Below, in pieces: positions 15,448 to 41,484 of a DNA stretch of 64,000 bases. Position numbers and translations under genes: made by a program. The DNA comes from Oculina patagonica (Eukaryota): the NCBI RefSeq assembly GCF_052425735.1, contig NC_135759.1, positions 29,388,001-29,452,000 on the forward strand. Reading direction: 5' to 3'. The notes under the pieces are model-generated. The model saw only the letters and a program-made list of their open reading frames with translations. It was not told where the DNA came from and did no database searches. Positions within the stretch are counted from its first letter, which is position 1. Every line of letters starts with the position of its first letter.

Positions 15448-15947
15448 NNNNNNNNNNNNNNNNNNNNNNNNNNNNNNNNNNNNNNNNNNNNNNNNNNNNN
15501 NNNNNNNNNNNNNNNNNNNNNNNNNNNNNNNNNNNNNNNNNNNNNNNNNNNNNNNNNNNNNNNNNNNNNNNNNNNNNNNNNNNNNNNNNNNNNNNNNNNN
15601 NNNNNNNNNNNNNNNNNNNNNNNNNNNNNNNNNNNNNNNNNNNNNNNNNNNNNNNNNNNNNNNNNNNNNNNNNNNNNNNNNNNNNNNNNNNNNNNNNNNN
15701 NNNNNNNNNNNNNNNNNNNNNNNNNNNNNNNNNNNNNNNNNNNNNNNNNNNNNNNNNNNNNNNNNNNNNNNNNNNNNNNNNNNNNNNNNNNNNNNNNNNN
15801 NNNNNNNNNNNNNNNNNNNNNNNNNNNNNNNNNNNNNNNNNNNNNNNNNNNNNNNNNNNNNNNNNNNNNNNNNNNNNNNNNNNNNNNNNNNNNNNNNNNN
15901 NNNNNNNNNNNNNNNNNNNNNNNNNNNNNNNNNNNNNNNNNNNNNNN
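15448..15947. other. Assembly gap (500 N)
   Basis: Run of N. Confidence 1.
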
Positions 15948-16234
15948 TTAACAAAAATTCAGTGTTTTTCAAATCCATGTTATCTTTACAAATCCAGCCA
16001 ACTGAGCGGAAGTGACGACTGTACAATTTCCTGTCTTTCCAAATTCCAGATCAGCACCTGGATGAGTCCCAGTCAGATATCTAGAAAAACAGGTCTGACA
16101 GGTTTAAGTGGGATATACAGCCAGATGTCTATAGAAAACCGGTCTGACAGGTTCAATTGGATAAAATTGCGCTGGGTGTAGTCTAACTCTTAGTTCGGAG
16201 TGTTGATACAGCAAGGCCGGTAGCCCTTTTCATC

Positions 16235-19200: not shown

Positions 19201-20494
19201 ATCGTGAAATAAATTTTTAAATTTGCTTTTAATATTGTCTTTCAGAGTCTTGTGGAAAAGGCTGTCTTAACTGCACAGAGAGCATCTGCAGTGAATGCAA
19301 AGATGGATTCGAAATGATTGAAGAGAAGAATAAGTGTAAAAAGAAGAAAGGCAAGTTCTAATTCATTAGATGCTAGATGCAAGAGTCTGTTCGCAGGCTA
19401 GTATGTAGACCACCTTCCAATCAGGACTTAACAATCCCTGTTCTTTTTCGGTTATAATTAATGTGTGTCTTTCAAACAACACATTGTTCTGAGGTGTTCT
19501 CACACCGCAAAAAATTACTAATATTGATGTATTATCTCTGAATCGGTAATCCAAACATCGACTTGAAGGCCAGCCAGAACTCTGGACTCCAAATGCCGCC
19601 GATTTTCCCATAAGGCATTTTATTAACAATGGCAATCAAATCTTAATCCTCCCCATCGACAAAAAACCTCATCATACCAGTTTTTCTAGACAAAATATCT
19701 TCATCTTCCAGAAGCCAAGAAATTTTGTAAACAAGGGAGTTCGATAGCTGGCGTATTCTTATACGCTTTTGTTATCTACTAACTACTCTACTACTTCGTT
19801 CACAGATTGTGGAAAAGGTTGTCTTAATTGCACATCAGGTGTTTGCTCCCAGTGCAAAGAAGGCTTCACTCTCAACCGGAGGTCAAGAAGATGCGTTAAG
19901 CCATGCACACCCGCTGATCCTGATTTTAAAACTCCAGCCTGTGAAGGAAAAGGCAAAGGAAAGGAAGGGAAAAATAAACGAAAAGGCAAGTTCACTGATT
20001 TCTGTTTTGTTGCATACTTTCATGGATTCAGTCAGGTTCACATTAAAAGGAAAGTGTCACGAGAAATCTTCTAAGTTTTGTAAAGAGGCCCTGTTCCGGC
20101 CAAAAATGTTTAGTAAATTACTCGCAATCAATGGTTTTCGAGAAACTTTCTTTCAACTTGAAAACTTCAACTTGAAATTTTCATTAAATTTGAAAACAAC
20201 GGCCCGACGTTTTCAAGATTACGTCCAAAACTTTCCTACCAATTTGTACCCAAACAACATTTTAAGGACTTGTAAAGTACGTTTCAGCAAGGCCAGGCCC
20301 CTATGAGTGGATTTACAATTCAAACCAACACTTTCATGGGATTTTCAAATTGCACTATAAAATCTTAGTGATACTGCCCCTTTATGGTTTAAACTAAGCA
20401 GTGTACTGATACGTTTCTTTCTGTTTAAAAAACAGGAGGCAAAGGAAAACCAAAGCGCAAGCCGACACCTAACCCTGTAACAAAACCACAGTAA
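16235..20494 (+). CDS. Secreted cationic furin-like-repeat protein, type A (gene 1, 277 aa)
   Basis: Exons 16235-16373, 16794-16970, 18265-18438, 19246-19350, 19806-19985, 20436-20494 total 834 nt in frame; all introns phase 1; introns 4 and 5 use AG|GCAAGT donors. Signal peptide MKNIWLILLVIAVVLLVAA, K/G-rich arm, four CxxxCxxCx4-5CxxC modules, tail GKGKPKRKPTPNPVTKPQ*. AATAAA at 20552, 20651 and 20699. Confidence 0.9.
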
Positions 20495-21292
20495 CTGCAG
20501 ATTCAGAAGACCACTGCCCGTATTAAATGGAAACTACCTATACCGGAGCCGAATAAAGCCACAGTAACCTAACACTTCTAAACTAACCCAGCACAACCAC
20601 ACTAACGCAAGACAGCACAGACAATCGCTTAACATAACCAACTGATTAGTAATAAACATTTAACTATAATTGCAAGAACATGGTTGCGATCATGTTGAAA
20701 TAAAAGCTGATTGGATCAAGCCATTGTTTTCCTTTATTCCTAGCTTCATAGTTACAGCACTTACTCTTTAGCTTAGTGATTATTTCATGTATAAACAGAA
20801 TTAACAAAATCACACGGGGTGATTGATAAGGGTTTTGAATAGATTAGAGAAACCTGTTTTTATTAAGTTCGGGTTATTGAGAACCTGTATTACTAGACGG
20901 AACTGTCACAGATACGAAGAGACCGTTGATCGCTGTTATTGAAGTATCATATGTAGAATAGAAAGTTTCGTATTTTGTTATAAAGCTGCACAGTTAAAAT
21001 CTGTTGTTGTATTTCCAAATCTGACTGTTATGAGCGTGCAAGGAAAACTTGTTATCATGCCAGGGCATTGGCTGACCATATCCAAAAAGTTAAGATAGTT
21101 ATTACGTGATCTTCCCCACCCTTCTTGTCCTCTACTGTGTAGCAATGCATTTGTTTCTTGATTAAATGTCCATCAATCCAAAAGGAAAAAAAAAACTTTT
21201 GTATGGAAATCATTGAAGAGGAATTGCCAACTCTCATATCGGTATCGTAGCAACGAAATTCTACAACCCGCGCGCAAGGAAGTCAGGGGGTA

Positions 21293-21780
21293 CACTCTTT
21301 TTTTTCTATAAGAATCTTGTTTATAAGAATATCGAGGCTGAAATTTGTGAACTTTTAAGAATATCTTAAGAATAAACCCGAGGCTGATGTTTTTGAAAAG
21401 AATAATTTGAGTTGCAATTAATGCAATTAATTATGTTTTTAATTGAAACAAAATCAGGTGTTTTCATTTCCTTCATTGCATCATTGTAGCCCTGTGAGGA
21501 ATGCTTTGTGTTTAAAAAGCCAAACGGCCAAGTGTTATCTGACGCGACATGTTGATCTTGCTGGCTGCAAGGCTAGGAGTGATGCAACACTTGCACAATG
21601 TAACACGATACAGAATTGGACACTAAACACTAATAATTGATTACCCAATACTTGCTAAAACGGACATTTCAAACGGTATTTTCTAAGAATGTTCATAAGA
21701 ATATTTTCAGCCTAAAATCGGCAGAAAAATAATACTCAGCCTGGGTCGGAAAAACTGTATTCTTATAAAAAAAAAGAGTG
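21293..21780. mobile_element. TA-flanked MITE
   Basis: TA|CACTCTTTTTTTTCTATAAGAAT...ATTCTTATAAAAAAAAAGAGTG|TA. Absent from the paralogous site near 32415; a related copy lies at 22871-23254. Confidence 0.8.
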
Positions 21781-22329
21781 TATCCCTCTTAATATCAGGG
21801 GGGTAGAGGTTAGGGTGTGCTGACTCCACTTACCCGGCCTATCTTATTCAATTTTTTCACGACCCTGTACCCTTTTGCTTAAAGCGGTCTTTGATTCGAT
21901 TAAACGCTTAAACGCCGGGTACCGTATAAACGCCGGGTATCTAAGGTGCAGTTGAAAATAGAAGTTAATTAAACGCGGGGTTCATCAGGCTAAGTTTGAA
22001 TAAATGCTGGGGGTGTTTAATCGAGAAAATACGTTTGCCCCTCTTACCTTTAAAGGCCAAGGTTTCCTTTTCCGTGCCGGCGGCCGCAATTTAAAAATAT
22101 CTTGACAAACTCATATTATGTAACATGACAAACATGAGTAATGATTCAAACTCACCCAGGGCGCATACTTCAAGCTTCGCAGCGTGTTTTTCGGTTCCCG
22201 CAGACGGCAACTATTTCTGAAATCCCTTACCGTGACCTTTAGTGCATTAAATGAAAACAATGCAATTTTTTTACTTCCCACATTAAGCAAAGCATTTTAT
22301 TTTAGCAAAGCGTTAACAGCCTATCAGTT

Positions 22330-22830
22330 AAAATTAATTGGCACCAACAGGAAATTCGACTTTTATGCCTCATTTGAATCTGGTTTCCTGGATGTGATAA
22401 ACAATCCTCGCCATATAACTGCTACAAACATATTTCGATTTGGAAATCATAAATCACGTATTGAAACTGGTAGATACACAATATCCAAGACGTTTATTCT
22501 TTAATAAATTCGAAAACCTGCTCTTTCTGCCACATTTTCCATTTTTGTGCAATTAATGACAGTTACGTTTCAAATTGAGATATAGTATTTTTAATGCGTT
22601 CCATGTGAATGCAAAAACTTCGTTCCTTTGTAACAGTATTGATCCTGCTGTAGTCAACTGCTGCTTTTGTTTTTCATGCAATGTCCCTTAGAGATAAAAC
22701 TTTGTTTGTAAAATGAGAGCATTATCTATTTATTTCTGATATAATCATATTTTCTTTAGTTTAATAGGTAATGCCGTGCACTGTTATAATTTGTTGTTGT
22801 CGTCGTCGTTGTTGTTGTTGTTGTTGTTCA
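22330..22830 (+). mobile_element. Degenerate 3' fragment of a non-LTR retrotransposon (RTEX-like C-terminus)
   Basis: Peptide FRFGNHKSRIETGRYT resembles a LINE ORF2 C-terminal motif; followed by a (GTT)n tail; paralogous remnant at ~32860-33125. Confidence 0.5.
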
Positions 22831-24235
22831 TACTCTCCAGCCTGACAAAGGTACCCCTTTCGGGCGGAAACACTCTTTTTTTTCTATAAGAATCTACTTT
22901 ATAAAAATATCGAGGTTGAATTTGCCAGATTTTAAGGATATTTCAAGAATAAACCCGAGGTTGAGATTTTGTAAATACAATATTCCAATTTCTAAACGGC
23001 AAAACTGGTTAAAAAAAGGCAATAAAGGCAGCGCGAGCCGTATGTTTAGCTATGTTTGATGCTAATAACATTTCTGCAAGACGATGTATACACCAAACAC
23101 TTGTTTTTGATACCCCAATACATTCTAAAATGAAAATGTCATACGCTATAATATATCTAAGAATATTCACAAGAATATTTTCAGCTAAAATCGACAGAAA
23201 AATAAGAATATTCAGCCTAGGCCGAAAAACAATATTCTTATAGAGAAAAGAGTGTAGTCGTCATGATAGGGAGTACCCTCCTCGCTGGGAACGTGACGAT
23301 TTATAATATATATTGATCAGTAAAAAACCCTGCAGAAATAACCACCAATTAGACAGATTGAATTAGAAGAACGAAAATTATGCAATTTTATTAACCAAGT
23401 AAAAGATTAAATTAGATTATTCGTAGGCCCGCTAAGTGTTTTACTGGTCGGTACTGTTTGTCTGTACTTCGTAACTGGTACGTGCAAAAAGCCAAATTCC
23501 ACGCCGTATTGCTTGTGCTGTATGGAGAGTCAGACTGCTAGCCTGTATTGTAGGCTACGTAATGCCGAGACTGAACTGGCTGCCAGCCAATGCATCGTCC
23601 GGAAGTTCTCTCTCTTTTTTTAACTTTTTCTTAAAACATTTTTCCGGTAATGGAACTAAGCTGTTTAATATCCTTCTGCAGGTCAAGAGTGATACGGCAG
23701 GAGTCACGTTCAAAATAACAATTACTTTTAACATACCTTATAATGAATAATTTCAGACAATTCAGTATGATCAAAGACTTGGTATTTTATACAAAATTAG
23801 CTTTAGCGGGTATACAGAATCGCTCACAGGGTCGACGTATGCATGTGTGATATGACGACCTGTGAAACAAAGTACGTATTGTTTGTTTTTTTTGCGATTA
23901 TCTTTTATCTGAATGGATCATTCTTGGGCAGTGTATTCCAAAAGGGACATACTGAGACAAATAAGGTCATCTTTCAATAACCTGCGATCAGGCTTTCTTT
24001 TTTTCGCGGCGGAGGAAAGGAGAAAATTCATTTTTCCGTTGACCCCTCCGCCCCGAGAAAAATAACGCCTGATCGCAGTTTAATCTTTCAAAGACTTCTC
24101 TGCTGTACTGTAGTGTCAAAATAACTTCTTTTCTGTGGTAAGAATTACATCGGGAATGTAACGTGCCAACACTTACGAGGGCGTTTAATCTCGCATGACA
24201 TCAGCCAAGGCTATCTTTCACGAGGCTTAAATAAC

Positions 24236-27200
24236 GGCATAGTATAAAACAAGGACTGGACTCTGGACTGGACTCTGGACTCTGGACTCTGGACTCAAAA
24301 AAACCTGGACTTGCAATGAAAAAAAAAAAAAAAAAAAAAAAAAGGAATTAAATTAAATTATCCACACGATGATTTATGTGAAATACAGACCTGTGTTAAG
24401 GCTGATAATATTAAAGGCTGATTTTTGTTCTATCAAAACTCTATTTCTTCTAGTCTCTCTCTTTCTGCAGCCGTTTATAGGGATGTCACACAACGCTCTG
24501 AACGCTTCCCAAGAGGGGGAGCGTTGTGTGACATCCCAAAAAATGCTGCAAAGGAGACTGCGTTTCTGTCGAAGTATTTATCGTTGCGCAGTGGTGGATG
24601 GTATGTTGTAACAGAAAGAATGAATTGCTATTGTGTCTTTTCTTTTCTCTTTTTGAAGTGCCTACTGCCTGTATCTCTTCAGATGCTGTGTAAAGTGGAG
24701 TCTGTTCTCGGCCCGATGGCTGTTACTACTCTCGTATGGGTGTCAATAACATATGTATAACTAATTATCAAAACGACAGGGCTCTGAAACGTTCAGAGAG
24801 AAATCACGAATCTGTTATCTTTAATCAGTTCGATATATAGGTACTAGGTGAACTGTCACGGTTGATAAATTAAACGGCTTCTAAGTAAACGCAAAATATA
24901 CAGACACTGAAGTTTACTTGTTAAAAAACAAGTTACTCGATGGAACGTAAAGATGTTCTAGCATTCTTTACATGGACATTTCCGTCAATTTTCGACTACT
25001 ATAAAAACCCAACAATAAGCTCGCTAGCACGAAAAATGCTTCAACGTAACTTGCACGTTATCTGACAGCCCATCGAGTTCTCTAGCTGCCTCGAATACCT
25101 CACTATCTGTTGGTTCACACGATCAACTGATTCTAGTCGTCTGTTTTCTGGTTGAAGTTAGTTATTGGAGGAATAGTTAAATTCAGTACAGCCTTGTTCA
25201 TGCCCGTCTGGACAGTGCCGTGTGAAGGACTTATTTCCACTTTCGCGGATGATGGCGTGTTTAGCGTGCCGGTTCTTGCCTGATTTCTATTCGGCGCTGT
25301 CGTGCTTTCTCCAGCTTGAGCGTTTGTAATATCATTCACGCGAGGTTTTCTCTATGGAAAATAGCATGAAATCGACGGGCAAAATTGGTTACCATGTGTG
25401 ACATACCCAAACCCGTAACCGTTTTCAGACCCGGCTTCTGAAAGTTGTACTCGGTTTGCGATCAAAGCATTCCAGCTAAATTGCATTTTATCGCCTTGAA
25501 AATCAAAGGAAACCATTTGCTTTGTAAACTGATAAAGTATCACACAATTTACCGCACATAAACGTTGTGGTTAACGAAAGTAAACGCTTACAAAAGAAAG
25601 TTTAAAATTCAACTCTAATTACAATTTTTGGTTATTTCTCTTTCTCTCTTATTCAATTGGAGTTTAAATGACAAATACACCCATACTGAACCAAAACGGC
25701 TTAAAAGCCATACCCTTTGAAGAGACGCATATCCAAAAGAGCTTATATAGGATAGGCCCTCCCCACCCCGGGCCTACTCTGCTTAAATGCAGCAACAAAA
25801 CGAGCTGGAATTACCCTGATTAGTTCACGCTTAATAAAGAAAAATAAGCAAAAACTTATAAGAACAGAATTGTTACTATCGATTTAAATCAAAGCTCCAA
25901 AACTCATCCCAAAGGGCCTTTGATTATTTTATCTGTCTATCAGGCGGCATGTGAGCCAATCGCTCACATTATCGATCGATCCAATTATCACTCATTACAT
26001 TCCTACTGCGCGGGGGTAAAATATAGGTAAAATAAATGTTGCAAGTTGCTAGAAACTGGTGCATGCAGCGTTGTTATGTTTCATAATTTTAGCGACATTT
26101 TGAGCTGACACTCGAGGGTTGCGTGCTGGTAAATATTGTAATCATAGGCGAGCTTATTGTTAGGTTTTTATAGCAATTAAAAATTGACGCAAATGTCGAT
26201 ACAATGTATGAGTTCACACTACACACTCTAAGCCTAAGTCAAGCCAAGTCATCCTAAGTCCGCTTAAGCATTCAGACATATATTTGAAGACAAATTCTTT
26301 TCGTGCAAAACTGTCATCATAAGCGATAAAAATTATCGCTAATGATGACATATCGTATCGTCTTAAATTTCGTGAGGTAGTCACGATCCATTTTAGCGAC
26401 GAAATTGAGATCAAAATGAGACCGAGAAGCCGTAAAATCGCTGTAATTGCGACTGTTGTCTGTTTAATTATTAAATTTACAACGTTGATCAGCCAAATAA
26501 CCTTTTTCAATACGAAATCTCATGTTCCTTCATGAAAGAATGATGGAAGATTTTCTCCAAGAGAGTGAAAGCTTGCTTTTTCTGACCGCCGTACTTTTGA
26601 GCGTTCGTCGGATAAGGTGGAAAGTCCGTAGCGTAATTTGCCTTCAAACTTTCCGTCCTCTCAGCGATGCATGTTCAGTGGTTCTTGTTCGTGGCAGAGA
26701 AGTAGCCGTGTCGTGATTTTTTTGGTTTTCGTGCCTAACGCGAGAATCTCTATCTGATAAAACTCCCCGCTTTTGAAATTTTTTTGCTATCAGGTTTCTT
26801 AAGTCAGCCTTTGTCATGTTTGAAACAGACTTAAGAACTGCTTAGATCGTTTGAGTTCGCCGACACTAAGACAGAAATTTAGCTTTTGTGACTTAGCGGT
26901 TCAGACCTTTCATTTTCACTAAGTTCACTAAGTCGACTTAAGAGATTGCTAAGTCGTTGCGTGACATCCCTAAAAACGGCTGCAGAAATAGAGACTTGCA
27001 GAAAATGGAGCCTTGATAGAAAGAAATAAGCCTTTGTCGAAAAATACAATAAGGCCGAGGTATATTTTTTTGACAGAATAAAAATACGCTCTGTATCAGA
27101 ACGCCCTGATTACACCACACCCCTAAAAAAAAATTAACTCTTTTCTAAACAGAGGACTCTCTTTGTCTAAACGGCATGCCAAACACCTCAAGCAAAGCAA

Positions 27201-27458
27201 CAGGCATTACTGTCTTTTAAAACTGGTCTGTATTTAACTTAATCCGTGGCTCTGTGGCTAATTTTTATCTTTATTCTTATTTTTTTTCGTTGTTTTTAAT
27301 TGTTTTGTAGTGGAGTCAATAGGTTTTTTTTGAGTCCAGATTTTTTGAGTCCAAGTTTTTTTGAGTCCAGAGTCCAGAGTCCAGAGTCCAGAGTCCAGAG
27401 TCCAGAGTCCAGAGTCCAGAGTCCAGTCCAGAGTCCAGTCCTTGTTTTATACTATGCC
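24236..27458. mobile_element. 3.2-kb non-autonomous Mutator/MULE-like element in the promoter of gene 2
   Basis: TIR GGCATAGTATAAAACAAGGACTGG plus (CTGGACT)n subterminal arrays; perfect 9-bp TSD TTAAATAAC at 24227-24235 and 27459-27467; empty site visible at ~41295. Confidence 0.9.
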
Positions 27459-27648
27459 TTAAATAACGTATATGACACGCTGTTTGTGACGGCGAAGAGG
27501 CAATTAATTGTTCAACACCTACGCACCCCATTGTTTCTAGACATATCTGGAGTAAACCGATCTCAGTTAACAGTCCTGAAAATACCGAGATGAAAAGGAC
27601 TGTCCCATTTGCGCAATTCAGTCTTGGAAAATCTTCGAAGGCATCACT

Positions 27649-30600
27649 ATGAAGAGCGTTTTGATAACTTTGTTGTTGGTCGTCGCTGTGCTGCTTGTTA
27701 CAGCTGAACCCAGAAGACGAGGCGGAAAAGGAAAACCCGGTGGACAGAGACCTGGAGGCCCGAGACCATGGCAAAAGAAGGGTAAGTTACAAAACCAGTT
27801 ATGTCTTCTTCTGTTATCAACTGCAAATCCAGTAGTTGATTTATTGTTTTACATTTGGTGTCCCCAATGATTTTGTTCTTTATGTTTAGAATGTCACAGA
27901 AACTGTTCAGACTGTCAAGAGGGGACTTGCCGGGCGTGTGATGACGATTTTGCGCTGAAAACGATAACCCTTCGTCGCTTTAATAAAACTACCTGTGTCC
28001 CTTGTCGGCGACTTAAGATGAAGAACCCTGCTCTTTTTCTTGAACAGTGTGTGACTGGTAAGTAATTTCACTTGAAATTCTGATGATGTTGGTACAAATG
28101 CTTCGAGTCCCGTATACAGTCAACGGGCTAAAAAGCCAGAAGGGAGAATTTCATGCGCGGATCGTGCACCACGGACACTTGATTTTCATTTATTCACGCA
28201 ACACGCGCGCGGTACACGTTTCGAACTTTTCACTTATTGAGCCCAGTTTTATATATTTGGTCGTCTTTAGAGACGAAAAGGCTACACCCTCATCGAAGCA
28301 ATAATTTTTTTCTCCATTTCAGCAACGCATTAGGTGTCTACGTCAGAGCGTCCCTTTAATTAGTCAATGAGGGGATATTATCCTTGGCTACCTACGTACT
28401 GTCCGCTTTATAGAGGGTGTCCATATATAAGTTTGACCATTAGACAAAAAGCTTTGCATGAAATTTTGAATTATAGTTTATAATTTATTTGATAATTATG
28501 CTGATCTTTTCACTTGAAAGAAATTACCTATTTTTTATTAAACTTTCCAATTACGATACACTTATTACAATGTAAAGGGGGCCAACTGTGATCAATTAAG
28601 ACTGTAATTAAGGTTTTACTGTTCTTATATTTAGAACGTCTATCGCATGTACGTATTGCATTGTTTTAGATTGTTTTTACTAAACTCGTAGAAAGGTATT
28701 ACACTTTCAGATACTATTAGACTAATTCCATGGTTTCCTATTGTTTTGTTTTGTCTATTACGCACTAACTGCTAGATATTGTACTATAAGTAAATGAAAT
28801 CACTCTAAGTGTACTTAGCTTTTCGGGCAATACCATCTGTAAATGGGAATGCTAATAAAATTGTTGTTGTTGTTTTTGTAGTAGTTGATCACCTTTCCTC
28901 CTAACAGCGGCTTAGAACTATGAGGTAACAATTAATCAGGCAGCAAATTAGACAATTTGTTCTTGATATCAAAGATACCAGGGTACCACTTAGCTCGTGG
29001 CAGGTCCTTAGTACAATAATACAATGCAAACAATGCTTTTGTGTTGTAATGCATTTACATGTACATCTAACTGAAGAAATGTTGACTTGTAAAAAGCATA
29101 AACCATGAACGGTAAGACTGGATGAGTAATATTCCATTTTCCCTTTCTTAATAATCACAATGTTTTCTTCTTTTGGAGTGTAAAAGCGAGATTTAAGCAA
29201 CCTGTCATATCATAATACTTATTTTGTCAGACAGGGAATGATTTTTCAGATTTCCCAGCAAACATTTAGGTCGCATCTTTCATGGTTTATGCTTTTCACG
29301 GGTCAACGTTTATTCAATAACATATATTTATAGTTTTATAAACGTAAAACAAGGAGACAAAATACCATAGCTACAAAGTAGTTTATAAAATATAAAAGGT
29401 TAAAAGATAAAAACGATGCAAAGATGTAAAAGACATATCATAATCACATTTGAGAGTTAGCCAAACAAATGGGGTTAAATCGGCAGTGACAAACTCAACG
29501 GCCTTATGCGCCTACTGGCGCGACGAGTATTGATGATGATGACAAACTCAACGAAAAAACGTTGTCTAATGTGCTTCGACTTGTGTTGCATGTTTCAGTG
29601 CCTACACCCGCACCTGTCTGTCCTAAGAACTGCTCCAGCTGTCAAGATGGAACCTGCCTTACCTGTGACAGTGGATTTGCGTTAGTCTCTCGGCGTAAAA
29701 ATAAAACAATTTGTATTCCCTGTGACTTGGGAAGAAATGGCAAAAAAGGCGACAGATCACAGTGTGGCGCAGGTAATTGTTCTTGTTGCTTTGTCTTGAG
29801 TTGCGACTTAAGTAGTGAAAAATTAAATTAACGTTCCATTTGTTGGTTAGCCTGCTTAGCAGGAGCCTGTCATGGTAGTTTGCCAACGTGTTTTTTTTTT
29901 TTTGCGCCTTTCGTGTTTTCCGAACGCGCGCTCAAAAACTCCACAGGCGCCTGCTTCGCAGGCTGTTCGTTGGTTTGCCGGACTTAACCTGGATGGCCTT
30001 TTCGGACACTGTTAGCTGTGAAAAAATGTTGAAACTAAGAGATTTATGTCACGGAATTTCGCAGATTTTTGGTCTAAACTGTTCCAACATTAGAACATTT
30101 CAAGAAAGATATAACCTTAATTTGGGGATAGAAAGCCTCCGCTATAAATATCGGGTTTTTTTTTCAGCTTTAAATATCGGAAACAACTAAAAAACTTAAT
30201 CCTCGTTTTTTCAAAGTAGCAAACCCTTTCCTTCCTAGCCATCTGCAGCCAAAGACGCTTGTTAACAGTTGCAGTGCTCTAACATAGCAATTGTCAATAA
30301 AAAATGGACCATTATTTTAGGTTTCCTACGACATAAATACAAACTCAGTTGGTTGTTGCTGTTATGACAAAAGCCCCTTTAGATTCCCTAGCTTTTTATT
30401 TCCTCGCCACATGTACCCACTAAAACAACTGCTGCAATCATGTGTAATGAATTTTAAAATTTGCTTTTAATATTGTCTTTCAGAGTCTTGTGGAAAAGGC
30501 TGTCTTAACTGTACAGAGAGCATCTGCAGTGAATGCAAAGATGGATTCGAAATGATTGAAGACAAGAATAAGTGTAAAAAGAAGAAAGGCAAGTTCTAAG

Positions 30601-31640
30601 TCACGAGATGCTAGATGCAAGAGCTCCCGTATGTAAACCGCCTTCCATTTAGAACTCTAGACTCCTTTAATATGTCGCCGTTTTTCCGAAAGGCATTTTA
30701 TTTATTACTCAGTATACCAGTTTTTCTAGACAAAATATCTTTATCTTACTCGCTCTAGATATATATTTTAAAAGCCAAGGAATTTTATAAACAAGTGAGT
30801 TCATTAGCTGAAAGTTCCTTGTACGCTTTTGTTATCTGCTAACTACTTTACTACATCGTTCACAGATTGTGGAAAAGGTTGTCTTAATTGCACATCAGGT
30901 ATTTGCTCCCAGTGCAAAGATGGCTTTACTCTCAACCGGAGGTCAAGAAGATGCGTTAAGTCATGTACACCTGCAGATCCTGATTTTAAAACTCCAGCCT
31001 GTGAAGGTAAAGGCAAAGGAAAGGAAGGGAAAAATAAACGAAAAGGCAAGTTCACTGATTCTTAGATTTTTGCATACTTTCAAGGATTCAGTAAGCTTCA
31101 CATTTAAGTGACAGTGTCACGAGAAATCTTCTAAGTCTTATTGTAAAATATTCTAGAACTACGAGGATACAATCACTGTTAAGCATTAATCATTTTCCAA
31201 GATGTAAAGAGACCCTGTTAGAGAATCCAATTACAAGTATCCGGCCAAAAATGTTTAGTAAATAACCCACAATCAATGGTTTTCGAGAAACTTCTTCCAA
31301 CTTGAAAACATTTCATTTTGAAATTCTCATTAAATTTGAAAACGACGGGCCGACGATTATGTCCAATTCTTTCCTACCAATTTGTACCCAAACCACGTTT
31401 TAACAATATTAAGGACTTGTAAAGTACGTTTTAGTAAGGCTAGGCCCCTATGAGTGGATTTACAATTCATACCAACACCTTCATGGATTTTCAAATTGCA
31501 CTATAAAATCTAAGCGATACTGCCCCTTTTTGGTTTAAACTAAGCAGTGTACTGATACGTTTCTTTCTGTTTGATTAACAGGAGGCAAAGGAAAACCAAA
31601 GCGCAAGCCGACACCTAACCCTGCAACAAAACCACAGTAG
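27649..31640 (+). CDS. Secreted cationic furin-like-repeat protein, chimeric B/A (gene 2, 272 aa)
   Basis: Exons 27649-27781, 27890-28057, 29599-29772, 30484-30588, 30866-31045, 31582-31640 total 819 nt in frame. Exons 1-2 match genes 3/4; exons 3-6 match gene 1, including both GC donors. Confidence 0.9.
29501..29539 (+). mobile_element. Severely 5'-truncated RTE LINE tail
   Basis: GCCTTATGCGCC...GAGTATTGATGATGA resembles the RTE 3' end at 61712-61765; flanked by a TGACAAACTCAACG direct repeat; absent from gene 1 (~18210). Confidence 0.75.
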
Positions 31641-31809
31641 CTGATTCAAAAGACAACCGCTGGAATTAAATTGAAACTACCGGAGCCGAATGAAGCCACA
31701 GTAACCTAACACTTCTAAACTAACCCACCACAACCACACTAACGCAAGACAGCACAGCCAATCACTTAACATAACCAAGTAACTGATTAGTAACAAACAT
31801 TTAACTATA

Positions 31810-31930
31810 CAGTTGAATCCCGATAACTCGAACCTTCAAGGGAAATATATCGAAAAAGGTTCGAATCAAAAAAGGTTCGAGTTAGCGGGAGTTCCGGAGT
31901 TACTGAGGGTTCGAGTTATCGGGATTCACT
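31810..31930. mobile_element. Tc1/mariner (pogo-like) MITE in the 3' UTR of gene 2
   Basis: TA|CAGTTGAATCCCGATAACTCGAACC...GGTTCGAGTTATCGGGATTCACT; absent downstream of gene 1. Confidence 0.75.
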
Positions 31931-34342
31931 AACTCTTTTAGCTTTGTAATTATTTCAGTAACAGAATCAACAAAAACGCGCGGTGTGATTGATAAGGGTT
32001 TTGATAGTTTAGAGAAACCTGTTTGTATTTAGTTCGAGGTAATGAGAATCCGATTTACTAGACGGAATGTCATGGCTACGAAGAGAACGTTTATCGCTGT
32101 TATCGAAGTATAATATATGTAGAATAGAAGGCTTCATATTTTGAATAATAAAGCTGCACAGTTAAACCAAGTCTGAATGTTATGAGCGTGCGAGGAAAAC
32201 TCGCATTATGTCAGGGCACTAGCTGACCATATCCAAAAGTTAAGATAGTTATCAGCTTCTTCTTACAGGATGTACACCAATACAATACCTTCCCCTAGCT
32301 TGTACGTTATCTTCCCAACCCTTGTATGGCAATAATTAAAGAGAAATTGCCAACTCTCATATCGATATCTTAGCAACGAAATTCTACAACCCGCGCGCAG
32401 AGTGGAAAGTCAGGGGGTGCACCTCTTAATATCAGGCATCAGGGGGGTGGGGGTAGAGGTAAGGGTGTGCCTGCTCTATTTACTCTGTCTATCCTATTCA
32501 AAAACGGAATATTCAAGTATTATATGATTTTCAAGACCCTGTACCCTTTTGCATTTAGCGGTCTTTGATTACTATACTACTTAGTCTAACTGTCACTTCG
32601 TCTCATTCGCCCTTCTGTCAATTTGAAGTCTTTTATAAAGGCCAAGGTTTTCTTTTCCGTGCCAGCGCCCACAATTTAAAAATATCTTGACAAACTCAAA
32701 TCATGTGACATGACGACAAACTAATTATTCAACAATAACTCACCCAGGGCGCATACCTCGGACTTCGAAGCGTGCTTTCCGGTCCCAGACTGTAACTATT
32801 TTTGAAATCCCTTACCAGTGCCCTATTTGAAAACGACACAAAATTCTTTACTTCCCAAAATTCGACTTTTATGCCTCATTTAAAACAGATTCACAAAAAT
32901 CTGGTCTTTGGATGTCATAAACAATCCGACCTCATAACATAACTACTATAAATGAATTTTGACTAGGGAATCATAAAGTATTGATCCTGCTGTGCGTCGA
33001 CCAACTTTGTTTCCAAAATGAGACCATTATCTATTTATTTCTGATTTTATTATGTTTTGTTCAGTTTAAACGGGTAATGCCGTGTACTGTTATGCTTAAT
33101 AAATTTGTTGTCGTCGTCGTTATTAATATTTTTTTATGCCTCTCAAAAAAACAACAATAAAAGCAGCACTAGCCGTATTTTTGATGCCAATAACATCATC
33201 TCAAAGAAGTTATCCACCAAACACTTGATTGATACCCCAATACATTAATTCTAAAATGGAAATGTCGTATTTACCAAAATGGTGCAATTTTATTAATCAA
33301 AAGATAAAATTACTTATTCGTAGGTCCGCTACGTGTTTTACTGGTCAGTACTGTACTTAGGAACTGGAACGTGCAAAAAGCAAAACTCTACGCCGTGTTG
33401 CGCGTGTTTTCTGGAGACTGCTAGCCTGTATTGTAGTATACGTAATGCTGACACTGAACTGGCTGCTAGCCAATGCATCGTCCGGAAGTTCTCTCTCTTT
33501 TTTTTAAACGTTTTTTAACATTTTTCCGGTAATGGAACTAATATGTTTAATATCCTTCTGCAGGTCAAAGAGTGACACGGCAGGAGTCACGTTCAAAAGA
33601 ACATCAAATAACTTTTAACGCCCTATAATGTACGCTAATGTATAATTTTAGATAGTTTTATGATCAAAGCCCGTAGAAAGCATTCGCTCACTGTAGCTGA
33701 GAGGTGCACTGAATCAGAATGTGCCCACAGCAAAATAGCCCATGATTTCTGCACTCCTACTGGCCCAATGATATGGCGCGTGCAGCAAAAGTGTGTATGA
33801 CGACTGCTGACTCATCATTTGGCGCGCCTGCACATGGTCAACGTATGCATGTGTGATATGACGACAAGTGAAACGAAGTACGTTTCGGGTTTTTTGAGAT
33901 TGTCTTCTATCTGAATGAATCATTCCTGGGAAGTATAATCCAAAAGGGACATACGTACTGAGACAAATAAGGTCATCTTTTGAAGACTTCACGGCTGTAC
34001 TGTAGTGCCAAAAATAATTTTCTTCCTGTGGTAACAATTACATCGGGAATGTAACAAAGAAACGTGCCAACACTTACGAGGGCGTATTATCTCGCATGGC
34101 ATCAGCCAAGGCTATCTTTCAACTGGAACTGCAAATGCCCACGTTACGAGGCTTAAATTACGGATGTGACACGCTGTTTTTGACGGTAAAGAGGCAATTA
34201 ATTGTTTAACACCTACGTACCCCATTGTTTCTAGACAAATCTGGAGTAAACCGATCTTGGGTAACAGTCATGAAAATACCGAGATAAAAAGGACTGTCCC
34301 ATTTGCGCAATTCAGTCTTGGAAAATCTTCGAAGGCATCACT

Positions 34343-37108
34343 ATGAAGAGCGTTTTGATAGCTTTGTTGTTGGTCGTCGCTGTGCTGCTTGTTACAGCTG
34401 AACCCAGAAGACGAGGCGGAAAAGGAAGACCTGGAGGACTGAGACCCGGAGGACCGAGACCAGGAGGACGAAGACCGGGAGGACCGAGACCATGGCAAAA
34501 GAAGTTTCGGGGTAAGTTACAAAAGCAATAATGTCTCCATCTGTTATCAACTGTATATCCAGTAGTTCTGATTTATTGCTTTACATTTGGAGTCCCCAAT
34601 GTTGTCGAAGCTGATTTTGTTCTCTATGTTTAGAATGTCACAGAAATTGTTCAGACTGTCAAGAGGGGGCTTGCCGGGCGTGTGATGACGATTTTGCACT
34701 GAAAACGATAACCCTTCGTCGCTTTAATAAAACTGTCAGTGTCTGTGTCCCTTGTGGTCGGCGACTTAAGATGAAGAATCCTGCTCTTTTTCTTGAACAG
34801 TGTGTCACTGGTAAGTTAATATCCTTTGAATTTTTTTATGATGTTGGTTCAAATACTTCGAGTCCCGTTGACAGTCAAGGGGCTGTAAAGCCAGAAGGGA
34901 GAACTTCATGCGCGGATCGTGCACCACGGGCACTTGATTTTCATTTATTCGCGCAGCACGCGCGCGGTACACGTTTCGAACTTTTCCCTTTCGTCTTTAG
35001 AGACGAAAGGGCTACACCCTCTCCGAAGCAATATTAGACTGCAAAACAGTCGTTTTTTTCTCCAAAGTCGTTGGAAAAGCGCTTATCGCTCTCGTTCGAA
35101 AGCCGAGCGCGTTCGCAAAAGAAACGACTATTTTGCAGTCTAAAGCATTATGTAAAACTTTTACAAATAACAAAATCCTCCTGAAATTGCCCAAAATACA
35201 CTGTTATTAAAACCCCTTCTGCTTGTACTCCTTTTTAAAAACGGTTCTCTTATATAACGTTTCCCTTAGAGTGTCCCAGAAACTGTACGACTTGTGAGGA
35301 CGGCTCCTGTAAAATATGTGATGATGGATTCTTCAACGTTGAGACACGACTTCTGCAAAGGAAGATATGCGTTTCTTGCGGTCCGAGAATGAAGAAAAAT
35401 TGGCCGGACGTTTATGTGAAAGAATGCTCACAAAATGGTAACAGTCTCTTTATGTACTGGCTCGCTTGAGAAGGACCACATTGAACGAGTTTCTTTGTAT
35501 TCATAATAAATACGTTGTGGCTGCCATCTTTCAGTGGAAATTCTGTAAAATGTTTTGACTACCGGGCATTTAGTCTATTTAAGACCGTGCCCGGCTGCCG
35601 GGCATATAGCCACAGCCATATAAATAAACAGAGAAGATAATCTTTTTTTGAGAACGGAGGGAGAAGTGGCCCAGTCTTATCTGGAAACGCTCACATAATA
35701 ATCATTGTCATCAACAACAACTTTCTTACTTTGTCAAATGGCTTCTAGCTGACCAGAGGTATCCTACTATTGAATCGAGGGCACTTTTAAAATAGAAATA
35801 ACAATAATTAATAATCAACTTCCAACTCGTTTAATTAATATATATCTGATCGGAACTTACAATAATTTCTCGGCGTTGGCCGAACACGGTATAACTTGGT
35901 ATTAAAAGATTGTTTATGTTCTCAATACAGGCTGTGGACGTGGCTGTGCCAACTGTCCTGAGCCTGGTGTATGCACCGAGTGCGAAGAAGACCTAAAGCT
36001 TTTCACTCCACCCGGCAGTAACATCACCAGGTGTATTAAAAATTGCCCCCCATTTTACACACTCGAGAAGGGTTCGTCTCCTCCAAGATGCGAAGTTAAG
36101 CAAATCACAAAACCAAACAACAGTAAGTTTTTCCTTCAAATTGTTGTATAAGCGGAAGTAATAAACTTGGATATATTGTCTAGGTGTGCTATCAAACTCA
36201 AACTCGTATTGCTCTTAATCCTCTGGGCCAGTGCGTTGCGATCATACTGAGGGAGTTTCCTGATAAAAGGGATACAACGGACGGAGGAGACTCGTGATAA
36301 AAAGCCCTAAGGATCAATTGATGCGTCAAGGGAAAGAGTTTTAAATGGGACCGTAAGTGTCCCATTCCAAATATCCATGGAAGTGGGTAATGTCTTAATT
36401 GCAACCTTCTTTTCTATTTTATCTTGCAGAATGTGGAAAAACCTGCGCTGCATGCACAGAACAAGGAATTTGTACGGAATGCTTAAAGCCATCGGTACTC
36501 ATAAAATTTGGTGACCGCTCAATGTGCAGACAGCGATGCCCATTCCATTTCAGAAAGTTTGTCGATCCAAAAACGAGGGCTACAATCTGCGAGAAACTTA
36601 ACAAGCAACAGCGTAAAGGTTAGTTCTCTAAAAATAAACATGGAGGGTTGGGCAAGGGGGATTAGTACATACAGAATTCCTTAGCTCTTACAAAATGACA
36701 CGAATTTTCATAGTCTTTTTGCACTGAGTTGAACGAAAAAAAGGAAAAGATGCGGGTGCAAAAAATAAAGGAAAGGGAAAAATATTATTCCGTCCTTTCC
36801 TTTATTTCATCACAACCTCCTGACATTATGCCACTTACTTCAATTTGGGAGAAATTGATAAGCCATCCTAGCTGCTTTTTGCAGTACTCATGCACTAGGT
36901 AAAGGCCGTTGCCATGTTCAAACTAATACATCAACCTAATAAGCTATCTCTATCGCATCGCATTGTTGTGCGATTCAATAATGAAATAACGTTATCACTG
37001 GGCTCTTTATGAAAATGCTGATTTCTTAATTGGTTAATTGGTAATTAACGTTGTTTTTCTCTTCTTTAATTTACAGGCGGAAGAAAGAATCTGTCTGACC
37101 CATTCTAA
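34343..37108 (+). CDS. Secreted cationic furin-like-repeat protein, type B (gene 3, 308 aa)
   Basis: Exons 34343-34511, 34634-34810, 35270-35437, 35931-36122, 36430-36618, 37077-37108 total 927 nt; all phase-1 GT-AG introns. Signal peptide and (RPGGx)4 arm. Exons 4 and 5 are canonical furin-like repeats (CGRGCANCPEPGVCTEC...CIKNCPPFY...C). Ends GGRKNLSDPF*. Confidence 0.9.
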
Positions 37109-37882
37109 ATGAAGTGATTTCGGAAAGCGCTTCAACAAGGAAGCATTTTTGGCATATTTCTCTTTTCTTTTTTCCTTACAGAAATCAGATTAGGTTAGGT
37201 GTGTGTTGATGTCTTGTGCTCCGGTCAAACATTGAACCCACACCCTAAAACATAGCACAGTTTCGTGCGACAATATAGAAATAAGGACCAAATTAAATCA
37301 AATCGATTCTAAGACGGCACCACCTTGTTTAGGGCAAAAGACGAAGGACATTTTTGCCACAAAAAGGACTTGATCGTCTTTACTGAGCTTAGTCGAAAAA
37401 AAAAACAAAAGAATTAAAACGAATAAGAACTTTGGCACGCTGACAGCATTGTAATTTGTTAGTTAGTTTTGAGCAGGGTTTTAAAAAGGCAAGTGACACG
37501 GGACACGCTGCTAAATTTAATTTGTTGCTGAATATCACCTTTTACGCAGTTAACTTGTATGAGCGTGTGCCCAACATGTGTCGTCTTCTTTATATTTGGT
37601 ATCATTTAAAATAAATGTTATTAAACTGAGCTGAATTGCGTTGTTGACTTCAATTTAATATATTTAAGCCTGGAGTGTACATAAATACTTGACAAAATAC
37701 CGAAACGAAATTTCTGAAAACTGAATAAACCCAACCCAACCCTAACCCAAATTTCAGATGCAAAAATCATTTTGAAAATAAGCCAAATCGAATGTTTGGA
37801 TTTATACTCAGTTATAGCTCTTGAAGAAAGATAATCCCCTACCGTAGAGCTTGTTTTGCCTTTTACGCTGTTAGGACTGTGT

Positions 37883-37954
37883 TAGCCTGCGTTGCAGACG
37901 AACAAAACCCCGGTTATGTATAACCGGGGTTTTGTTCGTCTGCAACGCAGGCTA
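37883..37954. mobile_element. 72-bp palindromic miniature element, TAG...CTA ends, 9-bp TSD
   Basis: TAGCCTGCGTTGCAGACG...CGTCTGCAACGCAGGCTA; TSD GGACTGTGT; absent in the duplicate copy (~45100). Similar elements at 23978-24082, ~29848-29965, 35035-35142 and ~39808-39893. Confidence 0.85.
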
Positions 37955-38528
37955 GGACTGTGTTAGAGAATGCTCAGATCTACTGTGGCACTTTAAGTTT
38001 GGGTTTCAGAACGTTATGTTCAGAGAGTTTTACTCTGTGGTATTCTTGCGCGCACCAGATGTGTATCAGCCAATAAAATCTCCTGCATCACAATCAGTTC
38101 AGGTCAGTTCCTTTGTCCCAGCAACCTTCGTGTTTTTCAGACAACTTAAGAGGAATGCGTGACACCATTTGTTTGTAACGCAAAATGGACCACACCACGC
38201 CTGATATATGCACTAGAATACTATTCTCGCAGCCGTTCAATGGAACGTCTATTGAACTAGTAAAGGTAAAAGATAAAATGAATACTATTGCATTACGTAA
38301 AATATATATCCGTGATCACGTGCGGAGATGAATAGTTCGAAATTGATTCTGTTTACACAAAAATATTCGGTATGAACACATATGCAAATCGCAAGTCTGT
38401 CGTCCATTTCGCGCCAAAGCGTGTTTGAACCTGTTAAAGCCAATTCCTGCACATCCTCAATCCAGTTTCTACTCTAGGCTTTTCATCCTGTGAATTATAA
38501 AAAGATTATTTCTCTGATTTCGCCAAAG

Positions 38529-38738
38529 TCATAAGAGTTTAACGGGATTCTTCTCTTCAAACAAATGATGCCTGGTGTAATCGTTGTTCAGCACTCGATT
38601 GGGCGTCCGTTCCAGTGTTGTTTTGATGTCTTTAAGCGGCTGTCTTGTGCAGATTATTGAAACGATCCACAATGTAACGAATAGGGCAAACAGAAGCGCA
38701 GAAATATCAATTGCTGTAGCCAAATCGAGACCCGACAT
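38529..38738 (-). CDS. Small single-pass membrane protein (69 aa)
   Basis: ATG-initiated ORF with an N-terminal TM segment (AIDISALLFALFVTLWIVSII). Intact in the duplicate (2 synonymous and 1 non-synonymous change). Similar to the ORF at 48693. Confidence 0.6.
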   Translation of the reverse strand: MSGLDLATAIDISALLFALFVTLWIVSIICTRQPLKDIKTTLERTPNRVLNNDYTRHHLFEEKNPVKLL

Positions 38739-39176
38739 GATTCGTGAATATCATCGATGCGTTTACGATTGGAGCGGTCGCAAAGTTGTTTCGTGGTTGC
38801 GTGACTTGGTACACCCAATCTCATGTTGCATACAAAGTGATTTTGTCCAGATTTTTTTCTTTCAGTGAAGAAACACGAAGAAAATGATAGTAACTTCCTT
38901 TGATCATCAGATAAAAATATAATAAAGCACATAGTCAAAAACCATCAAGAAATAACGAATGATGTCGCATCGCCGTGGAAATGAAGGGTGTCACGTACGT
39001 AAATATTGTAACTGAATGTCAACATCAGTGATCAGAGATAAGTCGTGCTCGCCCGCGATCGCTTCGAATCCAGCTTTATGTGATATATTTTACTGATGAA
39101 ATGACATGATAATCGCATTCCCGGCTAAATTGCAGCACAAAGACAGAACGTTGGTCAATTAAGATGGAATTCAGCC

Positions 39177-39551
39177 ATGGAAGAGGAAATACAACCGAGA
39201 TCTGTGCGAAAGAAATTGATGCGCGACACCATTTTCATTTTCGTTGGATTTTGTTTCATCATTTTGTGCTTCGTTTTCCTGGGAGTCGCACAGCAACAAC
39301 AACATATAACTGAGGAGCACTGTGAGGATTGTAATGGTGCGAATAATCCAAAAGTGTTTCGACTTCTTTCGGCGATATGTTTCATATTTGGGTTTACGAT
39401 CATGACCGTGTTTTGGTGGCATTGGAAAGCGATCAGAAGTGCTTATGTATTGCACCAAAGACACTTGGAATTGGAGAGATTGATAGGGAACGTTGATCAA
39501 CCAGTCAGAAGAGCAAATAGATTATCACTTGGAAAGAGAAACAGCGGTTGA
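39177..39551 (+). CDS. Small two-TM membrane protein (124 aa)
   Basis: GCCATGG start; two hydrophobic helices around a CEDC loop. The duplicate at 46368 has no indels or stops and several synonymous changes. Confidence 0.7.
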   Translation: MEEEIQPRSVRKKLMRDTIFIFVGFCFIILCFVFLGVAQQQQHITEEHCEDCNGANNPKVFRLLSAICFIFGFTIMTVFWWHWKAIRSAYVLHQRHLELERLIGNVDQPVRRANRLSLGKRNSG

Positions 39552-40044
39552 TATATAGATATATCTACCCAAGTAAACTCCCATAAGCATATTTTGTAAG
39601 ATGTCAATCAAGCCTGACTGGAATTTGCATGACTCAGCAGTGGTATTTTTTATGTTGAATTTTGATTACTGTACTACTTCAGATTTCGTTTCAAGTGAAA
39701 ACGTGCCCGTTGAAGAAAATGGTAAAGTTTTTTGTGAACCTTGATTGACACAAAACGTGAAATGACAGTTTTTTTAATTTTATAGAAAACCGTCCGACCG
39801 TGACAGATAGCCTCGACTCTCGTTGGGCTCGTCACGCGTTCGTTCGTAGGGAGGAACGCGTGACGAGCCCAAAGAACTTCTGCGTAGGGGCTAGTGGCTT
39901 CATGATGAGATCATGAGAGAGCAACAACTCAATAAAACGTGAAAGGGCATTTCTGTTATATGTAAATCGTGATATCTAGATACAACTCCAACTAAGGTCG
40001 TAAAAGCTCGAACAAAGTTGTCAAAAATAATTATATAAACGAAT

Positions 40045-40544
40045 NNNNNNNNNNNNNNNNNNNNNNNNNNNNNNNNNNNNNNNNNNNNNNNNNNNNNNNN
40101 NNNNNNNNNNNNNNNNNNNNNNNNNNNNNNNNNNNNNNNNNNNNNNNNNNNNNNNNNNNNNNNNNNNNNNNNNNNNNNNNNNNNNNNNNNNNNNNNNNNN
40201 NNNNNNNNNNNNNNNNNNNNNNNNNNNNNNNNNNNNNNNNNNNNNNNNNNNNNNNNNNNNNNNNNNNNNNNNNNNNNNNNNNNNNNNNNNNNNNNNNNNN
40301 NNNNNNNNNNNNNNNNNNNNNNNNNNNNNNNNNNNNNNNNNNNNNNNNNNNNNNNNNNNNNNNNNNNNNNNNNNNNNNNNNNNNNNNNNNNNNNNNNNNN
40401 NNNNNNNNNNNNNNNNNNNNNNNNNNNNNNNNNNNNNNNNNNNNNNNNNNNNNNNNNNNNNNNNNNNNNNNNNNNNNNNNNNNNNNNNNNNNNNNNNNNN
40501 NNNNNNNNNNNNNNNNNNNNNNNNNNNNNNNNNNNNNNNNNNNN
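40045..40544. other. Assembly gap (500 N)
   Basis: Run of N between two near-identical ~6.7-kb blocks. Confidence 1.
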
Positions 40545-41484
40545 GGAGACTGCTAGCCTGTATTGTAGGCCACGTAATGCCGAGACTGAACTGCATGCCA
40601 GCCATGCGCCAATGCATGGTCCGGAAGTTCTCTCTCTTTTTTTAAACTTTTTCTTAAAACATTTTTCCGGTAATGGAACTAAGCTGTTTAATATCCTTCT
40701 GCAGGTCAAAGAGTGATACGGCAGGAGTCACGTTCAAAATAACAATTACTTTTAACGCCCATACTTTACGTAATGGATAATTTCAGACAATTTTATGATC
40801 AAAGACTTAGAGTTTTTTCTTACAAAATGTAGCTTTAGCGGGTACTGAATCAGAATCGCTCACTGAAGCTAAGATGGGAACATGATTTCTGCATTCCTAC
40901 TGGCCCAGTATATGGCGCGTGCAGCAAAATTGCGTATGATGACTGATGACTCATAATTTGGCGAGCTTGCACATGGTCGACGTATGCATGTGTGATATGA
41001 CGACCTGTGAAACAAAGTACGTATTGTTTTTCTTTTTGAGATTATCTTTTATCTGAATGGATCATTCTTGGGCAGTGTATTCCAAAAGGGACATACTTAC
41101 TGAGACAAATAAGGTCATCTTTCAAAGACTTCTCTGCTGTACTGTAGTGTCAAAAATAACTTCCTTCTTGTGGTAAGAATTACATCGGGAATGTAACAAA
41201 GAAACGTGCCAACACTTACGAGGGCGTTTAATCTCGCATGACATCAGCCAAGGCTATCTTTCAACTGGAACTTCAAATGCCCACGTTACGAGGCTTAAAT
41301 AACGGATGTGACACGCTGTTTTTGACGGCGAAGAGGCAATTAATTGTTTAACACCTACGTACCCCATTGTTTCTAGACGTATCTGGAGTAAACCGATCTC
41401 GGGTAACAGTCATGAAAATACCGAGATAAAAAGGACTGTCCCATTTGCGCAATTCAGTCTTGGAAAATCTTCGAAGGCATCACT

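Follow-up and report, generated by a model that had tools for sequence, protein, structure and literature searches.

In the haemoglobin anti-Lepore arrangement, a fusion gene stands between its two parents (delta, beta-delta fusion, beta), and it is produced by a homologous crossover inside highly similar coding sequence. The same three-gene topology, namely parent-fusion-parent derived from adjacent paralogues, is seen for the gene described here, which is referred to as gene 2 hereafter. This gene (27649–31640, + strand) is located in a 64,000-nucleotide stretch of the genome of the stony coral Oculina patagonica (NCBI RefSeq assembly GCF_052425735.1, contig NC_135759.1, positions 29,388,001 to 29,452,000 of the forward strand); the whole stretch is called the window, and positions are given in its numbering. 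However, gene 2 differs from the anti-Lepore case in that the introns in which it was joined have no homology to each other, and filler DNA separates the two breakpoints.

Chimeric genes are known to arise when a tandem duplication begins inside one gene and ends inside its neighbour (PMC5460883, 2017). Like the chimeras of that study, gene 2 takes its 5′ end from the downstream parent and its 3′ end from the upstream one, both parents are intact, and exon shuffling goes together with a promoter swap. In contrast to them, the parents here are paralogues of a modular family, so that the result is a module-swapped member rather than a fusion of unrelated genes. Moreover, the event at gene 2 is old (silent divergence, dS, ~0.13), it is found in sequencing runs labelled as two organisms and is not a segregating variant, and its host is a coral. 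The duplications produced by alternative transposition of Ac/Ds in maize (for example PMC4270019) are also comparable: a breakpoint lies at a transposon terminus or its target-site duplication (TSD), the duplication is tandem and direct, and a chimeric gene may result. In contrast to the maize case, the junction of gene 2 keeps no transposon end, the element concerned is a 108-base miniature inverted-repeat transposable element (MITE) with a 9-base TSD that is not hAT-like, and an involvement of transposase would be deduced from a single coincidence.

Structure, polarity and age of gene 2

The window contains four genes of one small family, arranged head to tail on the + strand. Gene 1 (16235–20494, +) encodes 277 amino acids and represents the type A parent, gene 3 (34343–37108, +) encodes 308 amino acids and represents the type B parent, and gene 4 (41485–44308, +) is a younger type B copy of gene 3 (dS 0.025). 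Gene 2 consists of six coding exons (27649–27781, 27890–28057, 29599–29772, 30484–30588, 30866–31045 and 31582–31640, +), which form an intact open reading frame (ORF) of 272 codons plus the stop codon (819 coding bases). Its product is identical to residues 1–272 of the RefSeq protein XP_078353828.1, and the first 193 residues are those of its GenBank model.

In exon-wise BLAST, exons 1 and 2 of gene 2 matched genes 3 and 4 only (91–95%), and exons 3–6 matched gene 1 only (94–98%, with ~78–87% in the introns). The B-derived part (27458–28304, +) comprises 191 bases of the promoter and 5′-untranslated region (UTR), exons 1 and 2, intron 1, and 247 bases at the start of intron 2; in self-BLAST, 27458–28303 matched 34152–35033 and 41294–42173 at 84%. 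The A-derived part (28562–33669, +) comprises the rest of intron 2, exons 3–6, the 3′-UTR and downstream DNA, and is colinear with 17337–23776 (chain from 28562/17337 to 33669/23776, 78–86% in self-BLAST). This homology to gene 1 extends 2 kb beyond the stop codon of gene 2 into the intergenic DNA, and the chain resumes at the next B promoter. Between the two parts lies a junction filler (28305–28561, +) of 257 AT-rich bases, which is single copy in the assembly and is present in independent contigs. The duplicated unit occurs as two colinear chains of high-scoring segment pairs, copy 1 at 17337–28304 and copy 2 at 28562–35034 (both +); copy 1 is ~4.5 kb longer, with 3.7 kb at 23776–27458 against 0.5 kb in copy 2.

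The initial annotation, made from the letters of the window, had described gene 2 as an in-frame chimera with both breakpoints in intron 2 and the layout A / B5′-A3′ / B: the promoter, exons 1 and 2 and the start of intron 2 were said to match genes 3 and 4, the remainder through the UTR and downstream DNA to match gene 1, and the duplicated unit to run from A intron 2 to B intron 2. The alignments agree with all of this and set the ends at 28304 and 28562, and the dS values, the trees and the outgroup locus described below confirm the chimeric layout. A short tandem repeat (units like GTCCAGA) was also seen at 27330–27450, directly upstream of the position where the promoter homology begins (27458).

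The polarity of the event was examined using trees, silent divergence and outgroups. In the maximum-likelihood trees of the two halves, the N-terminal half of gene 2 groups with genes 3 and 4 (support 94/97). The C-terminal half falls inside the A clade (95/96), where gene 1 is its partner (92/89). The B half differs from gene 3 by dS 0.138 and dN (replacement divergence) 0.027, and the A half differs from gene 1 by dS 0.119 and dN 0.023; the Kimura two-parameter distances of non-coding DNA, which were taken from cleanly aligned segments of both halves, are ~0.08–0.15 and resemble these dS values. The parents A and B are separated by dN 0.44–0.63, with dS saturated. Because both halves are equal in silent divergence, one event made both new joints, long after the divergence of A and B.

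The supposition that the gene 2 arrangement is ancestral is contradicted by the outgroups, which carry pure A and pure B genes. Full-length proteins of type A are known from Pocillopora, Stylophora and Orbicella; those of type B come from Orbicella and Desmophyllum pertusum. Only one outgroup locus holds both genes; A and B of Orbicella are on different contigs. At this locus, which is that of Desmophyllum pertusum, B follows A on the same strand after 6.4 kb, and no chimera lies in the interval. The 5′ part of intron 2 of gene 1, which is missing from gene 2, is homologous to intron 2 of the Orbicella A gene, and a search with the A exon 3–4 region yielded no chimeric protein in other species. 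Thus, from the half-gene trees, the equal dS of the halves and the plain A-B locus of the outgroup, gene 2 is the derived form.

Contiguity, transcripts and reading frame

Contigs of four public runs (X2, X3, X18 and X20) were placed on 27300–31900; these are k-mer contigs, which give no expression levels. In X3, a run of a different study that is labelled as a different organism, one 883-base contig equals 28028–28910 with 1 mismatch, and it spans B exon 2, the end of the B homology and the filler before it enters the A homology; further contigs tile the remaining intron. In X2, three contigs tile 28028–28854 along the same path across the breakpoints. The contigs thus cross both breakpoints, which is the opposite of the mis-join in intron 2 that had been considered as a refutation of the chimera.

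The splice joint 28057^29599, from B exon 2 to A exon 3, had been named as a junction to look for in reads and was found in one X3 contig. X2 shows the joints 28057^28882 and 28924^29599, which pass through a mini-exon described below, and the joints of introns 1, 3, 4 and 5 of gene 2 are also present in the run contigs. The chimeric splice 28057^29599 is used in both the GenBank model KAL9984502.1 and the RefSeq model XP_078353828.1. Loose ends of the contigs correspond to gene 1's own exon 2–exon 3 joint (at 29594) and to transcripts of genes 3 and 4. Since B exon 2 joined in cis to A sequence can arise only from gene 2, gene 2 is transcribed and hence expressed. X20 (organism C) has A-type joints only and leaves exons 1 and 2 of gene 2 uncovered, which does not show absence. 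X18 provides only high-depth repeat pieces at 29148–30379 and 31766–31900 with many divergent loose ends, and these stretches (parts of introns 2 and 3 and the DNA just 3′ of gene 2) are probably dispersed repeats. An exact look-up of the 272-residue product in public contigs returned no record.

The mini-exon (28882–28924, +) is a 43-base alternative exon that intron 2 of gene 2 has taken over from type A, with TAA in frame after 7 codons. All of its 43 bases are identical to 17653–17695 of gene 1, its flanks are 98% alike, and the intron is ~87% alike. Transcripts of both gene 1 and gene 2 include it in X2 (joints plus one loose end), and it was not detectable in the Orbicella or Desmophyllum introns. 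It thus has the features of a stop-carrying (poison) cassette exon: inclusion in transcripts, an in-frame TAA as its 8th codon, and a conservation that exceeds that of the surrounding intron.

As for the reading frame, every intron of both parents is in phase 1 (so are those of the Orbicella A gene), and the frame is therefore kept automatically. It follows that being in frame alone is no evidence for selection, and the suggestion in the initial annotation that the intact ORF points to selection needs to be divided: the in-frame status is explained by the phase-1 introns, while the absence of frameshifting indels does bear the suggestion out. The aligned non-coding DNA of the two units contains 77 indels in 3,565 bases (1 per 46), of which 16% are multiples of three. 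Although 12 indels would be expected in the 558 coding bases derived from A, none is present (P 6e-6, or ~0.002 counting the gene 2 lineage alone), and all 4 indels of the B-derived coding part are multiples of 3. Because no coding indel shifts the frame against 1 indel per 46 non-coding bases, the reading frame of gene 2 has been under selection. The comparison of exon and non-coding divergence, likewise proposed at the outset, gave a pairwise omega (dN/dS) of ~0.19 in both halves, with replacements below the neutral expectation (binomial P = 1e-4) and an exon dS similar to the non-coding distance.

On these grounds, it is very probable that gene 2 originated when the segment between A intron 2 and B intron 2 was duplicated in tandem and its ends were joined without homology, and that the gene is expressed with its frame preserved. 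The ancestral locus would have contained two old paralogues in tandem, A then B. A single tandem duplication would have converted it to A, followed by the B promoter and B exons 1–2 joined to A exons 3–6, followed by B. The ends would have been sealed by non-homologous repair that left the 257-base filler at the joint, and the phase-1 introns allow the hybrid intron to be spliced in frame. The product of gene 2 therefore carries the signal peptide, basic region and module 1 of B, and thereafter modules 2–4 and the basic tail of A; the promoter of gene 2 is of the B type, and its expression may follow the B pattern. A second, later duplication of B would have given rise to genes 3 and 4.

Several observations weigh against this explanation. 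The contiguity of intron 2 comes from short contigs only, and no long read spans the 30-kb array; moreover, the contigs that tile intron 2 may derive from pre-mRNA and not from DNA. The chimeric joint occurs in one contig per run, with a shorter side of 29 bases, and the only listed exit of X2 from exon 2 of gene 2 enters the stop-carrying mini-exon. The contigs across the stop codon of gene 2 read TAA like gene 1 (31640 G>A), so that the signal of exons 3–6 may belong to gene 2 only in part. Finally, when substitutions are polarised with Orbicella, 5 replacement and 3 silent changes fall on the gene 2 branch, and the gene 1 branch has 2 and 8, respectively; the difference is not significant, and the substitutions leave room for relaxed or changed constraint on gene 2.

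Breakpoints and competing explanations

The B homology ends at AAGCAATA(A), and 28296–28304 corresponds to the left TSD of a 108-base palindromic element in genes 3 and 4. In gene 3, this MITE occupies 35035–35142 of intron 2 between the TSDs AAGCAATAT (35026–35034) and AAGCATTAT (35143–35151); gene 4 carries the same insertion at 42175–42282. The element reads TAGACTGCAAAA...TTTTGCAGTCTA and belongs to a family of at least 250 candidate copies with 9-base TSDs. An assignment as a hAT-like MITE with 8-base duplications was rejected, as ten copies show 9-base duplications. Gene 2 retains AAGCAATAA, that is, 8 of the 9 bases of the left TSD, and diverges at the exact base where the MITE begins; the alignment (28296–28304) is thus in accord with the earlier remark that the B homology stops where genes 3 and 4 carry a palindromic mini-element.

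This coincidence raises the possibility, to which we give slightly less than an even chance, that the transposon end caused the break. In one version, a double-strand break would have occurred in B intron 2, where the MITE has its left end, and would have been joined, with filler, to A intron 2 of the sister chromatid. In the other, the MITE would have been duplicated as well and would later have left gene 2 together with a flanking deletion and the gain of filler. Either way, the tandem duplication would be refined by this addition and not replaced. A divergence point within 1–2 bases of the MITE would be expected by chance in ~1 of 100–200 cases in an intron of ~350 bases; the coincidence was, however, noticed post hoc. 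This copy of the MITE is old, since the similarity to its nearest relatives is 86% and its two TSDs differ by one mismatch. No outgroup shows that it is older than the duplication; it is absent from the Desmophyllum and Orbicella loci, and both are too distant to date the insertion. The first 12 bases of the filler (28305–28316, after one A) equal MITE positions 19–30, but this match is a T-run motif that scores barely above the shuffle maximum (24 vs 23), and no MITE terminus is present in gene 2. The narrower proposal that the duplication was triggered by transposase cleavage at the end of this 9-base-TSD MITE in B intron 2 is more tentative, and we would put it at roughly one chance in three.

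The A part missing from gene 2 (16971–17336) and the missing B part (35143–35269) have no similarity to each other or to the filler beyond that of shuffled controls, and no template for the filler was found in the missing A and B intron parts, the MITE, the window or the whole assembly. The A-side site in gene 1 carries neither a MITE nor another repeat.

The next explanation accepts gene 2 as a real chimera and regards it as decaying: it would be transcribed, partly shunted to the stop-carrying isoform, and nearly neutral. The substitution counts on the gene 2 and gene 1 branches given above are compatible with this, the mini-exon is in use, and gene 4, which has lost a splice site (see below), shows that members of the cluster can do so. 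Nevertheless, the 819 coding bases are free of frameshifts and stops although the flanking DNA has 1 indel per 46 bases; all splice sites of gene 2 are intact, and all cysteines of its four modules are retained. In addition, the mini-exon is identical in the conserved gene 1, which argues for a regulatory feature of the family rather than decay. We therefore consider decay unlikely.

A homologous unequal crossover as in Lepore and anti-Lepore, for which the A and B genes would have misaligned or both introns would have shared a repeat, is a still poorer candidate and appears highly improbable. The topology parent-fusion-parent does fit, and A and B are paralogues of equal exon layout. However, A and B are very old (dN and dS as above), their introns are not alignable, and the breakpoints share no sequence and are separated by 257 unrelated bases, with no repeat at the A-side site in gene 1. 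Since no alignment between the introns of A and B is possible at the junction, where unrelated bases intervene, the join was non-homologous. Accordingly, the signature of unequal crossover that the initial annotation had recognised stands for the topology of the product and fails for the homologous crossover itself.

An assembly artefact, that is, a mis-join or collapsed haplotypes in intron 2, can be practically dismissed: the window has three N gaps (one of them adjoining gene 1 and one between genes 3 and 4) and a haplotig of gene 1 exists, but no gap lies inside gene 2, both breakpoints are spanned by a contig of X3, a run of another study with another organism label, B exon 2 is followed by A sequence in spliced contigs, and the halves differ from their parents by 12–14% at silent sites, as compared with 1.8% between the haplotig and the main contig. 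Gene conversion, by which the 3′ half of a complete B copy (or the 5′ half of an A copy) was overwritten by its neighbour, is common between tandem paralogues in general and has an equally negligible probability here, since it requires the homology that A and B lack, the match to gene 1 reaches 2 kb into the intergenic DNA after the stop codon, with colinearity of the entire unit as far as the next B promoter, the equality of exon silent divergence and intron divergence speaks against recent conversion, and exon-wise BLAST found no remnants of B exons 3–6 or A exons 1–2 near gene 2.

The gene family, its annotation and the meaning of the case

When A exon 3, B exon 2 and B exon 4 were used as queries, the 529-Mb assembly yielded only genes 1–4 and one haplotig of gene 1 as copies of this family. 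The product of gene 1 (exons 16235–16373, 16794–16970, 18265–18438, 19246–19350, 19806–19985 and 20436–20494, +) is identical to RefSeq XP_078356205.1, and that of gene 3 (exons 34343–34511, 34634–34810, 35270–35437, 35931–36122, 36430–36618 and 37077–37108, +) to GenBank KAL9984503.1. Their layout consists of a signal peptide, a basic stretch rich in Gly, Lys, Arg and Pro, cysteine-rich modules (four in type A and five in type B, one module per exon) and a basic tail. From these features, the A and B products are predicted to be secreted proteins of cysteine-rich, furin-repeat-like modules. Pfam scans of single exons and of whole relatives gave no family above the cut-off, furin-like families included; a sequence search of the PDB gave only EGF matches of the LDL receptor at chance level; and the sole leads from the ESM Atlas, to VSP-like or furin-like proteins, scored under the reliable level. 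For the AlphaFold model of the Orbicella A orthologue (pLDDT 62), the top Foldseek matches were all Fu1-Fu2 of R-spondin, at a weak level (E 5e-3, TM 0.3). Judging from this model, the family may resemble R-spondin Fu1-Fu2 in being secreted and in having stacked beta-hairpin cysteine modules and a basic tail; unlike R-spondin, the coral family has no TSP1 domain, and the structural matches are weak as stated. Relatives are named automatically in databases as 'major surface trophozoite antigen 11-like' or 'PCSK5-like', and the family seems to be confined to stony corals.

Members of the family differ in module content. The B-type gene of Desmophyllum pertusum has extra exon-2-like modules (matches at 10285–10446, 12883–13044 and 13265–13336 of the locus sequence 10001–14043), which indicates that the number of modules varies in the family through exon duplication. 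In gene 4, the donor of exon 3 is mutated from GT to TT (42578–42579). Its RefSeq model skips exon 3 and keeps the frame (252 amino acids), and its GenBank model uses an upstream donor (289 amino acids); to judge from the mutated donor and these models, the product may lack module 2. The units of genes 3 and 4 (33413–40044 and 40545–47261) are 94.5% identical in self-BLAST. The known haplotig, a 10.3-kb unplaced contig that covers gene 1, is 98.2% identical to 15948–21299 and matches more loosely beyond; because 94.5% is more diverged than this, the two units are probably true paralogues. Of the three N gaps in the window, one adjoins gene 1 (15448–15947), and another of 500 N (40045–40544) exactly fills the space between the units of genes 3 and 4, so that this tandem depends on a scaffold join.

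Some problems of annotation were also found. Introns 4 and 5 of gene 2 are of the GC-AG type with GCAAGT donors, as shown by the read joints; the GC donors lie at 30589–30590 and 31046–31047 in gene 2 and at 19351–19352 and 19986–19987 in gene 1, and the Orbicella orthologue has GTAAGT at both sites. For gene 2, an exon 5 ending at a GT donor at 31007 was considered and rejected, as this GT is absent from gene 1 and the reads show the GC donor at 31046. Owing to the GC donors, both GenBank models run past the end of exon 4 and stop there with 'GKF' (201 amino acids for gene 1 and 196 for gene 2). The RefSeq model XP_078353828.1 (602 amino acids) fuses gene 2 to gene 3 by a jump 31637/34277 into the 5′-UTR of gene 3. 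The jump leaves from the codon preceding the stop codon of gene 2, and since the implied TA...AA intron has no canonical splice sites, this read-through model is doubtful. In GenBank and RefSeq, the products of gene 2 are labelled only as hypothetical or uncharacterized, and the literature searches made yielded no description of gene 2 or of its chimeric origin.

The mechanism discussed here is a textbook one, and the value of the case is in illustration and annotation rather than in concept. It provides a complete and datable birth of a new gene by exon shuffling in a stony coral, in which the parents are preserved, the two breakpoints are located with single-base precision, a chimeric transcript has been observed, and an outgroup has the ancestral layout. 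For annotation, it warns that the GC-AG donors have cut short the GenBank models of genes 1 and 2 and that a RefSeq model has merged genes 2 and 3. Families with one module per phase-1 exon tolerate such accidents, because intron-to-intron joins stay in frame. In gene 2, a promoter and signal peptide of type B now precede a protein body of type A, which makes it a case of regulatory rewiring that can be tested. If transposase cleavage did trigger the duplication, the locus would be a cnidarian counterpart of the transposon-induced duplications of maize, and the ends of intronic MITEs in modular phase-1 genes could drive exon shuffling and promoter swapping in corals.

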